DNA of 64,000 nucleotides, from contig OZ287756.1 of NCBI GenBank assembly GCA_965649765.1, positions 44,330,001 through 44,394,000 of the forward strand, given 5' to 3'. A program made the position numbers and the translations under genes. The stretch is from Bispira polyomma (lineage: Eukaryota). Positions 1-53,022 of the stretch are shown in pieces; position 1 is the first letter of the stretch; each line of letters begins with the position of its first letter. The notes beneath the pieces were generated by a model that was not told where the DNA came from, did no database searches, and worked only from the letters and a program-made list of their open reading frames with translations.

Positions 1-3000
1 CTGCTGCTGGTAACTTTTGCTTGTAAGTTCATCCAAGAATTAGATCTTTGTATAGCTGATACCTGTGATAATGTGGCGCACATGCAGGCTTGTTCCTTAA
101 TACTGAAGCTGTCTGCAAATTGTTCATTTTGATCATCACAAATGTTGAAATTCTGAGACACACAGTATTCAGTGTGTTGCACTAGATTCTCAGATGCATC
201 AATCACTTCTTCATCTTGTTGTTTTGCAAGTGTATCTGCATCTTCGGGTGAATCACTTCTGATGTTCTGCACTTCACCATATACATTGTCATAGATTTCA
301 TAAATGTCACAGTCAATTGTTAGATTGTTGATTGTGCTCTGATCTAGCTGTTGTTGTAATGTTTCATCACATACTGTACTTGTGTCTAGTACAACAGCTT
401 CAAACACACTGTGTGATGTTGCAGTTTCAGCAATCATATCCTTTGTCACTTTTGTATCTTTTCGTGTCTCATTATCAATAGTATTTAAAGCTAGACATAT
501 TGCTATATCCACTAATTCTTTGGCAGTGGAATCTATATGATTTTCTTCCACAGTTACAATATGGTCCTCTCTGCTGCTGGTAACTTTTGCTTGTAAGTTC
601 ATCCAAGAATTAGATCTTTGTATAGCTGATACCTGTGATAATGTGGCGCACATGCAGGCTTGTTCCTTAATACTGAAGCTGTCTGCAAATTGTTCATTTT
701 GATCATCACAAATGTTGAAATTCTGAGACACACAGTATTCAGTGTGTTGCACTAGATTCTCAGATGCATCAATCACTTCTTCATCTTGTTGTTTTGCAAG
801 TGTATCTGCATCTTCGGGTGAATCACTTCTGATGTTCTGCACTTCACCATATACATTGTCATAGATTTCATAAATGTCACAGTCAATTGTTAGATTGTTG
901 ATTGTGCTCTGATCTAGCTGTTGTTGTAATGTTTCTTCACATACTGTACTTGTGTCTAGTACAACAGCTTCAAACACACTGTGTGATGTTGCAGTTTCAG
1001 CAATCATATCCTTTGTCACTTTTGTATCTTTTCGTGTCTCATTATCAATAGTATTTAAAGCTAGACATATTGCTATATCCACTAATTCTTTGGCAGTGGA
1101 ATCTATATGATTTTCTTCCACAGTTACAATATGGTCCTCTCTGCTGCTGGTAACTTTTGCTTGTAAGTTCATCCAAGAATTAGATCTTTGTATAGCTGAT
1201 ACCTGTGATAATGTGGCGCACATGCAGGCTTGTTCCTTAATACTGAAGCTGTCTGCAAATTGTTCATTTTGATCATCACAAATGTTGAAATTCTGAGACA
1301 CACAGTATTCAGTGTGTTGCACTAGATTCTCAGATGCATCAATCACTTCTTCATCTTGTTGTTTTGCAAGTGTATCTGCATCTTCGGGTGAATCACTTCT
1401 GATGTTCTGCACTTCACCATATACATTGTCATAGATTTCATAAATGTCACAGTCAATTGTTAGATTGTTGATTGTGCTCTGATCTAGCTGTTGTTGTAAT
1501 GTTTCATCACATACTGTACTTGTGTCTAGTACTACAGCTTCAAACACACTGTGTGATGTTGCAGTTTCAGCAATCATATCCTTTGTCACTTTTGTATCTT
1601 TTCGTGTCTCATTATCAATAGTATTTAAAGCTAGACATATTGCTATATCCACTAATTCTTTGGCAGTGGAATCTATATGATTTTCTTCCACAGTTACAAT
1701 ATGGTCCTCTCTGCTGCTGGTAACTTTTGCTTGTAAGTTCATCCAAGAATTAGATCTTTGTATAGCTGATACCTGTGATAATGTGGCGCACATGCAGGCT
1801 TGTTCCTTAATACTGAAGCTGTCTGCAAATTGTTCATTTTGATCATCACAAATGTTGAAATTCTGAGACACACAGTATTCAGTGTGTTGCACTAGATTCT
1901 CAGATGCATCAATCACTTCTTCATCTTGTTGTTTTGCAAGTGTATCTGCATCTTCGGGTGAATCACTTCTGATGTTCTGCACTTCACCATATACATTGTC
2001 ATAGATTTCATAAATGTCACAGTCAATTGTTAGATTGTTGATTGTGCTCTGATCTAGCTGTTGTTGTAATGTTTCTTCACATACTGTACTTGTGTCTAGT
2101 ACAACAGCTTCAAACACACTGTGTGATGTTGCAGTTTCAGCAATCATATCCTTTGTCACTTTTGTATCTTTTCGTGTCTCATTATCAATAGTATTTAAAG
2201 CTAGACATATTGCTATATCCACTAATTCTTTGGCAGTGGAATCTATATGATTTTCTTCCACAGTTACAATATGGTCCTCTCTGCTGCTGGTAACTTTTGC
2301 TTGTAAGTTCATCCAAGAATTAGATCTTTGTATAGCTGATACCTGTGATAATGTGGCGCACATGCAGGCTTGTTCCTTAATACTGAAGCTGTCTGCAAAT
2401 TGTTCATTTTGATCATCACAAATGTTGAAATTCTGAGACACACAGTATTCAGTGTGTTGCACTAGATTCTCAGATGCATCAATCACTTCTTCATCTTGTT
2501 GTTTTGCAAGTGTATCTGCATCTTCGGGTGAATCACTTCTGATGTTCTGCACTTCACCATATACATTGTCATAGATTTCATAAATGTCACAGTCAATTGT
2601 TAGATTGTTGATTGTGCTCTGATCTAGCTGTTGTTGTAATGTTTCATCACATACTGTACTTGTGTCTAGTACTACAGCTTCAAACACACTGTGTGATGTT
2701 GCAGTTTCAGCAATCATATCCTTTGTCACTTTTGTATCTTTTCGTGTCTCATTATCAATAGTATTTAAAGCTAGACATATTGCTATATCCACTAATTCTT
2801 TGGCAGTGGAATCTATATGATTTTCTTCCACAGTTACAATATGGTCCTCTCTGCTGCTGGTAACTTTTGCTTGTAAGTTCATCCAAGAATTAGATCTTTG
2901 TATAGCTGATACCTGTGATAATGTGGCGCACATGCAGGCTTGTTCCTTAATACTGAAGCTGTCTGCAAATTGTTCATTTTGATCATCACAAATGTTGAAA

Positions 3001-6000
3001 TTCTGAGACACACAGTATTCAGTGTGTTGCACTAGATTCTCAGATGCATCAATCACTTCTTCATCTTGTTGTTTTGCAAGTGTATCTGCATCTTCGGGTG
3101 AATCACTTCTGATGTTCTGCACTTCACCATATACATTGTCATAGATTTCATAAATGTCACAGTCAATTGTTAGATTGTTGATTGTGCTCTGATCTAGCTG
3201 TTGTTGTAATGTTTCATCACATACTGTACTTGTGTCTAGTACAACAGCTTCAAACACACTGTGTGATGTTGCAGTTTCAGCAATCATATCCTTTGTCACT
3301 TTTGTATCCTTTCGTGTCTCATTATCAATAGTATTTAAAGCTAGACATATTGCTATATCCACTAATTCTTTGGCAGTGGAATCTATATGATTTTCTTCCA
3401 CAGTTACGATATGGTCATCACTGCTGCTGCTGGTAACTTCTGCTTGTAAGTTCATACAAGAATTAGATCTTTGTATAGCTGTATCATCTGATAACGTGGT
3501 GCACATGCATGTTTTGTCCTTAATACTGAAGCTGTCTGCAAATTGTTCATTTTGATCATCACAAATATTGGAATCTTGAGACACACAGTAATCAGTGTGT
3601 TGCACTAGATTCTCAGATGCATCAATTACTTCTTCAACCTGTTGTTTTGCAAGTGCACCTGCATCTTCGGGTGAATCATTTCTGATGTTCTTTGCTTCAC
3701 CAAAAACATTGTCATAGATTTCATAACTGTCACAGTTAACTGTTAGATCGTCGTTTGTGCTCTGATCTAGCTGTCGTAATGTTTCTTCACATACTGTACT
3801 TGTGTCTAGTACTACAGCTTCAAACACACAGTGTGATGTTGCAGTGACAGCAATCATATCCTTTGTCACTTCTGTATCTTTTCGTGTCTCATTATCAATA
3901 GTATTTAAAGCTAGACATATTGCTATATCCACTAATTCTTTGGCAGTGGAATCTATATGATTTTCTTCCACAGTTACAATATGGTCCTCTCTGCTGCTGG
4001 TAAATTCTGCTTGTAAGTTCATCCAAGAAATAGATCTTTGTATAGCTGTATCCTGTGATAATGTGACGCACATGCAGGCTTGTTCCTTAATACTGAAGCT
4101 GTCTGCAAATTGTTCATTTTGATCATCACAAATGTTGAAATTCTGAGACACACAGTATTCAGTGTGTTGCACTAGATTCTCAGATGCATCAATCACTTCT
4201 TCATCTTGTTGTTTTGCAAGTGTATCTGCATCTTCGGGTGAATCACTTCTGATGTTCTGCACTTCACCATATACATTGTCATAGATTTCATAAATGTCAC
4301 AGTCAATTGTTAGATTGTTGATTGTGCTCTGATCTAGCTGTTGTTGTAATGTTTCATCACATACTGTACTTGTGTCTAGTACTACAGCTTCAAACACACT
4401 GTGTGATGTTGCAGTTTCAGCAATCATATCCTTTGTCACTTTTGTATCTTTTCGTGTCTCATTATCAATAGTATTTAAAGCTAGACATATTGCTATATCC
4501 ACTAATTCTTTGGCAGTACAATCTATATGATTTTCTTCCACAGTTACGATATGGTCATCACTGCTGCTGCTGGTAACTTCTGCTTGTAAGTTCATACAAG
4601 AATTAGATCTTTGTATAGCTGTATCATCTGATAACGTGGTGCACATGCATGTTTTGTCCTTAATACTGAAGCTGTCTGCAAATTGTTCATTTTGATCATC
4701 ACAAATGTTGAAATTCTGAGACACACAGTATTCAGTGTGTTGCACTAGATTCTCAGATGCATCAATCACTTCTTCATCTTGTTGTTTTGCAAGTGTATCT
4801 GCATCTTCGGGTGAATCACTTCTGATGTTCTGCACTTCACCATATACATTGTCATAGATTTCATAAATGTCACAGTCAATTGTTAGATTGTTGATTGTGC
4901 TCTGATCTAGCTGTTGTTGTAATGTTTCATCACATACTGTACTTGTGTCTAGTACTACAGCTTCAAACACACTGTGTGATGTTGCAGTTTCAGCAATCAT
5001 ATCCTTTGTCACTTTTGTATCTTTTCGTGTCTCATTATCAATAGTATTTAAAGCTAGACATATTGCTATATCCACTAATTCTTTGGCAGTGGAATCTATA
5101 TGATTTTCTTCCACAGTTACGATATGGTCATCACTGCTGCTGCTGGTAACTTCTGCTTGTAAGTTCATCCAAGAATTAGATCTTTGTATAGCTGTATCCT
5201 GTGATAATGTGACGCACATGCAGGCTTGTTCCTTAATACTGAAGCTGTCTGCAAATTGTTCATTTTGATCATCACAAATGTTGAAATTCTGAGACACACA
5301 GTATTCAGTGTGTTGCACTAGATTCTCAGATGCATCAATCACTTCTTCATCTTGTTGTTTTGCAAGTGTATCTGCATCTTCGGGTGAATCACTTCTGATG
5401 TTCTGCACTTCACCAAAAACATTGTCATAGATTTCATAACTGTCACAGTTAATTGTTAGATCGTCGTTTGTGCTCTGATTTAGTTGTTGTTGTAATGTTT
5501 CTTCACATACCATAAATGTGTCTAGTACTACAGCTTCAAACACACTGTGTGATGTTGCAGTTTCAGCAATCATATTCTTTGTCACTTTTGTATCTTTTCG
5601 TGTCTCATTATCAATAGTATTTAAAGCTAGACATATTGCTATATCCACTAATTCTTTGGCAGTGGAATCTATATGATTGTCTTCCACAGTTACAATATGG
5701 TCCACATTGTTGCTGGTGATAACTTCTGCTTGTAATTTCATAAAAGAATTAGATCTTTGTATAGTTGTATCCTCTGATAATGTGGAGCACATGCAGGTTT
5801 GTTCCTTAATACTGAAGCTGTCTGCAAATTGTTCATTTTGATCATCACAAATGTTGGAATCTTGAGACACACAGTAATCAGTGTGTTGCACTAGATTCTC
5901 AGATGCATCAATCACTTTTTCAAACTGTTGTTTTACAAGTGTATTAGCATCTTTGGGTGAATCACTTCTATTGTTATTTGCTTCACAAAAAACATTGTCA

Positions 6001-52660: not shown

Positions 52661-53022
52661 CTCGATCCATGGCGCGAGTGAGCTCTGCTCTTCCTTGAAG
52701 AAGACGGTGGCAGTGGAGAGAAGGACCTTGCCCCCGCCCTTGACCCCTGATGACCTACATTCTCTGCATCCTCCGACTTTCTTTGACCTATATCTGGCAA
52801 GGGTTCCACACTGGATGACGATCTGGTGGCAGAGTGGCTGTGGAGCCCTGAAGCTGTATTCTCTCGTGTGGGTAAGGGAGGAAGTCGTAACGGCGACTGT
52901 AATCTCTGGCCATCGCTCTTAGCCGTCCGGATTGTGTCAATCTTAGTTTTAATGGCGTCTTTTCGTTTTTCCAGGAAGCTGAGTTCTCGCTCCAGTGAAA
53001 ACACAGCAAAGCCATTATACAT
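52659..53022 (-). CDS. First coding exon of the giant gene (MYNGFAVFSLERELSFLEKRKDAIKTKIDTIRTAK...RHGSR); the exon itself starts at 53060
   Basis: Acceptor ttacttttacAG| before 53060. There is an in-frame TAA upstream of the ATG at 53022, which has A at -3. The region is GC-rich and coding-like. The phase-1 donor AGAT|GTAAAG fits the next exon. No hydrophobic signal peptide. Confidence 0.8.

Follow-up and report, generated by a model that had tools for sequence, protein, structure and literature searches.

Giant ankyrin, titin and nesprin are encoded by genes in which very large, repeat-built exons with symmetric phases are flanked by small ones. AKAP12/gravin and the projection domain of MAP2 are acidic and largely disordered, and class-V pyridoxal 5'-phosphate (PLP) enzymes are obligate dimers. 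Here, we describe a locus on the minus strand of a 64,000-nucleotide window, the whole stretch of DNA that was analysed (G000:C9:44330001-44394000; AT-rich eukaryotic DNA from the 1.035-Gb assembly of Bispira polyomma), whose predicted product recalls each of these systems. We consider it probable that the locus is a genuine gene maintained by selection, with 12 exons and 16,172 codons, which encodes a polyacidic chain, a series of helices and a PLP-fold domain. It is best seen as belonging to the giant repeat-scaffold kind, with an unusual origin, as the duplicate of an enzyme gene, and an unusual composition.

The likeness to giant ankyrin, titin and nesprin lies in the layout of the gene, namely the very large exons between small ones and the symmetric phases, and in a repeat copy number that varies between haplotypes. 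Unlike titin, obscurin, giant ankyrin and nesprin, the locus carries no Ig, FN3, ankyrin or spectrin domain that Pfam detected in any of the window exons, and its largest exon encodes a polyanion rather than a string of folded beads. This exon, exon 4, measures 36.5 kb and, to our knowledge, exceeds any known human coding exon. In composition, and by composition only, its product resembles the disordered polyelectrolytes found in calsequestrin-type buffers, prothymosin and the side-arms of neurofilament and microtubule-associated proteins. It differs from known polyanionic proteins in that the array is about 100 times larger and built of a regular unit with two conserved Cys-containing motifs. 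We know of no AKAP that carries a 12,000-residue polyanion or a PLP-fold domain, although, like AKAP12/gravin and the MAP2 projection domain, the protein described here is acidic and largely disordered.

Five coding exons lie within the window. A first-pass annotation had joined them through GT-AG sites, all in phase 1 and without a stop codon, and reading the coordinates directly from the sequence bore this out at all four junctions. Exon 1 (53022-52659, minus strand, 364 nt, donor AT/GTAAAG, the slash marking the splice boundary) starts with an ATG at 53022, seven codons downstream of an in-frame TAA, and encodes a conserved helical N-terminus followed by a basic head rich in S, P and R; no signal peptide was recognised by eye. 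Exon 2 (49206-49093, minus strand, 114 nt, acceptor ttacag/GT, donor CAG/GTACTA) is rich in S, P, R and T, and exon 3 (46080-45961, minus strand, 120 nt) has the acceptor ctgtag/AT and the donor AAG/GTATTG. The isoelectric points (pI) of the peptides encoded by exons 1, 2 and 3 are 10.9, 8.0 and 9.8, and S, P, R and T together make up 41-73% of them. A motif of the form TPxLPxI...SPRT is common to exons 2 (49094-49204) and 3 (45962-46078), with 10 of 17 positions identical (E 8e-5). Thus, exon 3 would be an internal duplicate of the exon 2 motif, and the pair looks like an exon duplication. Many SP and TP sites occur in the motifs of both exons.

Exon 4 (45092-8637, minus strand, acceptor ttacag/AT, donor CATG/GTCAGT) comprises 36,456 nt or 12,152 codons, and is separated by the 547-nt intron 4 (8636-8090, minus strand, phase 1, with GT and AG ends) from a second giant exon, exon 5, which enters at 8089 (acceptor acacag/CA) and is still open at position 1, the window edge. 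Read merely as open reading frames (ORFs), the same region consists of one minus-strand frame free of stops from 45114 to 8485 (12,210 codons) and of another, free of stops from 8237 to the window start. All five exons are stop-free in frame and add up, as the first-pass annotation had calculated, to 45,143 nt (364 + 114 + 120 + 36,456 + 8,089). Exons 2-4 are symmetric, with phase 1-1 and lengths divisible by 3, so that isoforms without the giant exon are possible and would keep the frame.

The gene, described at first as open at the window edge, indeed runs 13.5 kb further into the adjacent stretches. The frame of exon 5 continues for 2,241 nt into the neighbouring stretch L003, where its TAA overlaps the donor CACAG/GTAAGA (phase 2), so that the full exon 5 extends from window position 8089 to L003 7760 and measures 10,330 nt. 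Beyond it, seven small exons follow on the same minus strand: exons 6 (L003 6880-6738), 7 (L003 6252-6136) and 8 (L003 5042-4929), and, in the stretch L004, exons 9 (9646-9467), 10 (8606-8428), 11 (7524-7369) and 12 (6754-6509). The last of these was found via a paralogue and ends with a TAA at L004 6511-6509. Six of the seven downstream exons are conserved in a second species. In all, the gene model comprises 48,519 nt (16,172 codons) in 12 coding exons, totals that are sums of the lengths of exons searched singly, and it predicts a protein of about 1.8 MDa from a span of about 66.5 kb.

The downstream exons encode a domain with the fold of class-V PLP enzymes. Exon 9 matches the Pfam family Aminotran_5 (PF00266) with 27.1 bits against a cut-off of 21.5, over profile positions 147-196, and it matches the class-V enzymes 9aza, 8dl5, SufS and Egt2 in the PDB (E 9e-8); exon 10 alone gave no PDB match. 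The N-terminal motif of this fold is encoded by roughly 35 codons at the end of exon 5 (FGPTIK...FQLDQEAVFLNHGSFSAVPK), and the domain therefore straddles the exon 5/6 junction. Thus, the statement of the first-pass annotation that no folded domain could be recognised stands as far as Ig, FN3, ankyrin and spectrin domains in the exons are concerned, but it does not hold for the whole product, which ends in a class-V PLP-fold domain beyond the window. The Pfam matches DUF7038, DUF455 and Cas9_C_2 to window exons were rejected as spurious, being summed over repeats with no single stretch that passes.

A genome-wide scan for PF00266 yielded a second match on the same strand about 100 kb upstream, which belongs to a conventional class-V paralogue (C9:44435167-44444323, minus strand, loci L012-L014) with a Met start and canonical motifs. 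This paralogue begins with MNAKFGKQLKENAFFLDSNAVFLNHGSYGTVPK, its Met standing four residues before the shared FG...FLNHGS motif, and its first intron has the same position and the same phase 2 as the exon 5 donor. It matches the exon-5 tail and exons 6 and 8-12 collinearly; the short exon 7 found no match at the threshold used. Like the class-V PLP enzymes and the paralogue, the giant gene has the N-terminal FLNHGSF motif, the DxDADFY block, the lysine motif xKW and the C-terminal RISxHVY block, but about 15,760 extra codons precede the domain where the paralogue has only a Met four residues upstream. Since the conventional paralogue shares exon order and first-intron position with it, the giant gene appears to have arisen from a duplicated enzyme gene that gained a huge N-terminal extension.

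In fold-type I enzymes, an Asp pairs with the pyridine nitrogen of PLP and a His precedes the Schiff-base Lys. The paralogue retains the canonical motifs VDGAH and GNIHKW, whereas the giant gene and its orthologue have VINGTH and GNLSKW, with Asp replaced by Asn, His replaced by Ser and the Lys kept. The catalytic PLP site of the giant gene is thus incomplete, two of its three residues, the His and the Asp, being replaced in both species. Nevertheless, the PLP exons are the best-conserved part of the gene, with 75-88% amino acid identity between species. This combination suggests that the PLP-fold domain was retained for something other than the ancestral catalysis, and dimerisation would be the most plausible role, considering that class-V enzymes are obligate dimers.

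Comparative evidence for the gene model comes from the orthologous locus of the second species. A word search with the exon 5 linker retrieved two proteins, P0001 (3,415 aa) and P0002 (2,918 aa), both from ENA ERZ22147071. Both represent the exon 5 orthologue as called in ORF style, and they start with residues read from the intron. On both underlying contigs (L009 and L010), the exon 5 orthologue is preceded, at a distance of about 320 nt, by the end of an acidic-repeat ORF of 11,989 or 11,077 aa, and the two arrays extend over 33-36 kb. The orthologue of exon 1, P0003, is 75% identical and has the same donor, AT/GTAAAGTT. That of exon 2 has 114 nt and the same splice sites, with an amino acid identity of 91% over 35 residues (tblastn) or 86% over 37 codons. 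Both lie on one contig together with the downstream parts, in the order and on the strand seen here. The donor, acceptor and phase 1 of intron 4 are kept in the orthologue, and the exon 5 donor CACAG/GT (phase 2) and the exon 6 acceptor are conserved, with phases that fit. Outside the exons, the two genomes are unalignable save for a shared short interspersed nuclear element (SINE) and a 48-nt TATA block. The suspicion voiced in the first-pass annotation that such a gene might be fragmented by gene predictors came true in the second species, where the ORF-style calls divide it into three proteins.

Comparison of the proportions of synonymous (pS) and non-synonymous (pN) sites that differ between the species gave values for five parts of the gene, at synonymous divergence that is saturated or nearly so: exon 1 (pS 0.78, pN 0.16, pN/pS 0.21), exon 2 (0.57, 0.07 and 0.13), the alignable block of the acidic unit (0.49, 0.18 and 0.36), the helix segment of exon 5 (0.65, 0.32 and about 0.5) and the exon 5 tail (0.48, 0.24 and about 0.5). 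In the acidic block, differences were distributed 13/13/30 over the three codon positions, and shifted control frames gave pN/pS of 1.2-1.5; its alignment was built on protein, which favours low pN, but the third-position excess is independent of that. The acidic unit of the orthologue is 762 nt long versus 402 nt here, and the two have in common the motifs EAPVPVGTCVDD(D/E)TP, VPVPDGT(C/S)V.EEN and KDT(D/E)NL. In either species, the length of the unit is divisible by 3 (402 and 762 nt, with variants of 126 and 399 nt).

With a difference of about 1.5% between them, the two contigs of the second species behave as haplotypes. Over about 10.4 kb of coding sequence, including 8-9.6 kb of array, no frame-breaking indel separates them, the only two indels being whole units (762 and 765 nt). 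By comparison, 28 indels were counted in the neighbouring 10 kb, which is mostly intron, and the length of 20 of them is not divisible by 3. Array lengths differ between the contigs by 912 residues in the acidic and 497 residues in the helix array, and the frame is kept. These substitution and indel patterns show the reading frame to be under selection in every part tested.

The polyacidic array of exon 4 consists of about 90 tandem units of 402 nt (134 aa), which are 95-98% identical, lack indels and carry the motifs PVPVGTCVDDETP and VPVPDGTCVDEEN. The predicted exon 4 product has 12,151 aa and 1.34 MDa, with 39.7% D+E, a pI of 4.05 and a net charge of about -3,960; about 40% of its residues are D or E and 9% are P, and aromatic residues are very few. 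Unit types follow a higher-order periodicity, with blocks of two to three units recurring between 13470 and 44196 and one unit present in 13 identical copies, which suggests a recent expansion in the middle of the array through unequal exchange. In the 1.03-Gb genome, a search with the acidic unit returned 94 matches, all in this one locus. One copy, a degenerate unit (7394-7158, minus strand) that is 65% identical to the unit over residues 3-81, lies inside exon 5, and the acidic module therefore spans intron 4. In contigs from three DNA runs, which were perhaps made from the very sample that was assembled, the k-mer depth is 15-64 where the sequence is unique and climbs to about 350-7,200 at the edge of the array. 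The latter is about 50-110 times the single-copy depth and agrees with tens to about 100 copies, about 90 being assembled. On the plus strand, a mirror ORF of 12,071 codons (8660-44872) runs antisense to exon 4. It was rejected as a gene and is a by-product of the T-poor coding strand.

Exon 5 begins with a unique linker of 576 codons (8087-6360, minus strand) with the conserved head MKEIACTPLIDLFRFLHEF. The probability that this linker is open by chance is about 4e-20, and it gave neither a Pfam match nor a usable ESM Atlas match, the latter being true also of exon 1. The linker is followed by 14 repeats of about 190 aa, each with a helix (S/T)AKELVDIA(I/T)CLALN. Eleven of them lie in the window (6359-120, minus strand) and the other three in L003, where a fifteenth, C-terminal helix, IIAKQLADTAIHFALN, is found on the minus strand in the unique exon 5 tail. 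This type of helix repeat occurs only at this locus in the genome, in which exon 1 and the exon 5 tail are each single copy. With the 747 residues at the end of exon 5 as query, HMMER returned only the orthologue P0002. The helix, a TSxSVFEAxxLD block and a FADSFSIK block are nearly invariant across the two species, while the repeat unit measures 190 aa (570 nt) here and 249 aa (747 nt) in the orthologue, and the FADSFS and YEIYDNV-type modules follow one another in a different order. The modular layout proposed initially, with a basic S/P/R head, a polyanionic array, a unique linker and helix repeats, is thus what composition and exon reading show.

The helices had also been called AKAP-like. 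A regular-expression scan of exon 5 with what we take to be the consensus for binding the type II regulatory subunit (RII) of protein kinase A (PKA) gave 32 matches, all inside the 15 helices. As in AKAPs, the helix of each repeat is amphipathic, makes about five turns with a continuous hydrophobic face and fits this consensus; unlike in AKAPs, fifteen such helices stand in tandem on a single chain. The helices align to AKAP-IS, the sequence of which is QIEYLAKQIVDNAIQQA (PMC2652104, PMC4526808), at its A, K, I/L, V, D, A, I and A positions, and AKELVDIAICLA and AKQLADTAIHFA here compare with AKQIVDNAIQQA in AKAP-IS. PKA R subunits require five helical turns, and a charged residue in the hydrophobic face abolishes binding (PMC12203939). 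Older interactors of docking/dimerisation (D/D) domains other than those of PKA exist and are mostly ciliary (PMC12203939), and the helices might just as well bind a D/D protein of cilia or flagella other than PKA (PMC12203939, PMC8339350). The genome contains at least five loci with an RIIa domain. Of the AKAP-like label, the consensus match and the resemblance to AKAP-IS stand, whereas searches of Pfam and PDB by sequence came back empty. As a motif match, the AKAP reading is a good lead and not a result.

We infer that all twelve exons are joined in one mRNA that would be translated as a whole. Several observations weigh against this reading of a single selected gene with a helix-bearing giant product. 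The antisense strand of the array is open as well, so that the openness of the array alone is weak evidence. Among 76 in-register units, 11 synonymous, 52 non-synonymous and no stop variants were counted, which looks neutral. The species comparison leaves out exon 3 and the 5' end of the orthologous giant exon, and when proteins 5,500-17,500 aa long were word-searched with the 400 residues at the start of exon 4, nothing was retrieved, not even the ORFs of 11,077 and 11,989 aa, a failure probably due to composition filtering. Public runs that hold the stretch number three, all from one study, and they are DNA, because their contigs cross intron 4 at single-copy depth. In-frame Met codons occur within intron 4 and early in exon 5, and an internal promoter may yield a separate product of exons 5-12. 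For one helix repeat, AlphaFold2 (10-row alignment) returned isolated helices only, at a predicted local distance difference test score (pLDDT) of 32. The isolated helices matched neither the Pfam RII-binding families nor PDB peptide chains at E <= 10, in sequence searches that detect short helices poorly.

It is possible, though in our judgement unlikely, that the locus gives rise to several products, with the giant exons in different transcripts or optional. Such products might include a polyacidic protein of exons 1-4, a helix-plus-PLP protein of exons 5-12 expressed from a promoter in intron 4, or isoforms that skip exon 4. The symmetric phases of exons 2-4, through which the frame survives skipping, and the in-frame Met codons of intron 4 and early exon 5 would suit such an arrangement. 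So would the separate proteins that ORF callers made on the orthologous contigs, although calls of this style disregard splicing by construction. Against it stand the conservation of the donor, acceptor and phase of intron 4 in both species and the degenerate acidic unit that lies past this intron, in exon 5. Moreover, a stand-alone protein of exons 1-4 must terminate in intron 4, where no such conserved ending was seen.

We regard it as highly improbable that the array is a non-coding tandem repeat, intronic or untranslated, which is open through its purine-rich composition, and that the true gene consists of exons 5-12 or of the PLP part. Openness of both strands and unit variation within the genome that lacks a synonymous bias speak for it, as does the finding that about 1% of units shuffled at matched composition have at least one open frame; at intron composition, none of 5,000 units did. 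A non-coding repeat is, however, difficult to reconcile with peptide motifs kept between species, with the third-position excess, with a pN/pS of 0.36 as opposed to values above 1 in shifted frames, or with unit lengths divisible by 3 in both species. The haplotypes have no frame-breaking indel within 8-9.6 kb of array and 20 in the adjoining 10 kb, and canonical splice sites connect the array, in frame, with conserved coding exons at either end. Satellite DNA would fit no better, given a repeat that is confined to one locus and constrained in frame. That the length and continuity of the array result from the mis-assembly of a much shorter repeat is scarcely credible. Long arrays with 95-98% identity do assemble poorly, and several units are exactly identical, but the k-mer depth of about 50-110 times single copy is in line with about 90 units, even if the runs perhaps stem from the sample of the assembly; arrays of 33-36 kb are present on two independent contigs of another species, and the window has neither an N nor a break. 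A selected gene with one continuous product is thus the reading that we follow below.

Further elements were noted in and around the gene. A 48-nt block with TATATA (53746-53793, minus strand), about 730 nt 5' of the ATG, is 85% identical over its 48 nt between the species, in flanks that are otherwise unalignable, and a possible acceptor, tttacag/, lies at 53061, 5' of the ATG. From position and conservation, the block is a candidate for a core promoter or a 5' non-coding first exon. Copies of a tRNA-derived SINE with the box GGTTCGAA lie on the minus strand in intron 1 (51004-51148) and intron 3 (about 45780-45850). The intron 1 block had been considered as a missed exon and was rejected, being the SINE shared by both genomes; it aligns with a SINE copy in the corresponding intron of the orthologue. 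ARAGORN found no tRNA gene in the window. A search of the genome for processed (retro-copied) exon 4/5 and 5/6 junctions returned none. A broken non-LTR (long terminal repeat) retrotransposon (L003 42-3380, plus strand) with an APE endonuclease and a reverse transcriptase (ORFs of 132, 706 and 273 aa, with stops between them) is inserted antisense to the gene in the intron between exons 8 and 9, which owes to it its size of 5.3 kb. At 60525-60897, a 10-nt microsatellite (TATCACAACA) is repeated about 37 times.

Taken from N- to C-terminus, the predicted protein would comprise a helical N-terminus with a basic head, about 90 acidic units, the linker, 14 repeats with a fifteenth helix, and the class-V domain. 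In the scenario that we propose, the neighbouring class-V enzyme gene was duplicated and the first coding exon of the duplicate was extended, or fused to sequence upstream. The PLP-fold domain would then probably serve as a non-catalytic dimerising or docking module. The helices would probably serve as multiple docking sites for dimeric D/D-domain proteins, for instance PKA regulatory subunits or ciliary relatives of these, and the disordered polyanion would probably be a spacer or brush of very great length, or a buffer for cations. It is tempting to speculate further, although we doubt that the picture holds in full, that the product dimerises through a dead PLP enzyme into a scaffold of about 3.6 MDa, in which each chain offers 15 helices for docking D/D-domain dimers of the PKA or ciliary type and bears a tether of 12,000 residues whose net charge is about -4,000, and that this scaffold forms a giant polyelectrolyte signalling hub or a cation reservoir found in one annelid lineage only. 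If so, the haplotype-variable repeat number could tune the valency and reach of the scaffold.

For annotation, the locus is a warning, as ORF-based calling turned its orthologue into three unrelated-looking proteins. If translated as modelled, the product would rank with the largest animal proteins so far proposed, and a coding exon of 36.5 kb is exceptional. The locus shows how an ordinary metabolic enzyme gene can apparently become a giant repeat scaffold after duplication, with the enzyme fold kept as a probably non-catalytic module. It also offers a test case for multivalent docking of D/D-domain proteins, for the cell biology of extreme polyanions, and for the way in which 45 kb of repeats are kept in frame by selection amid changes in copy number.

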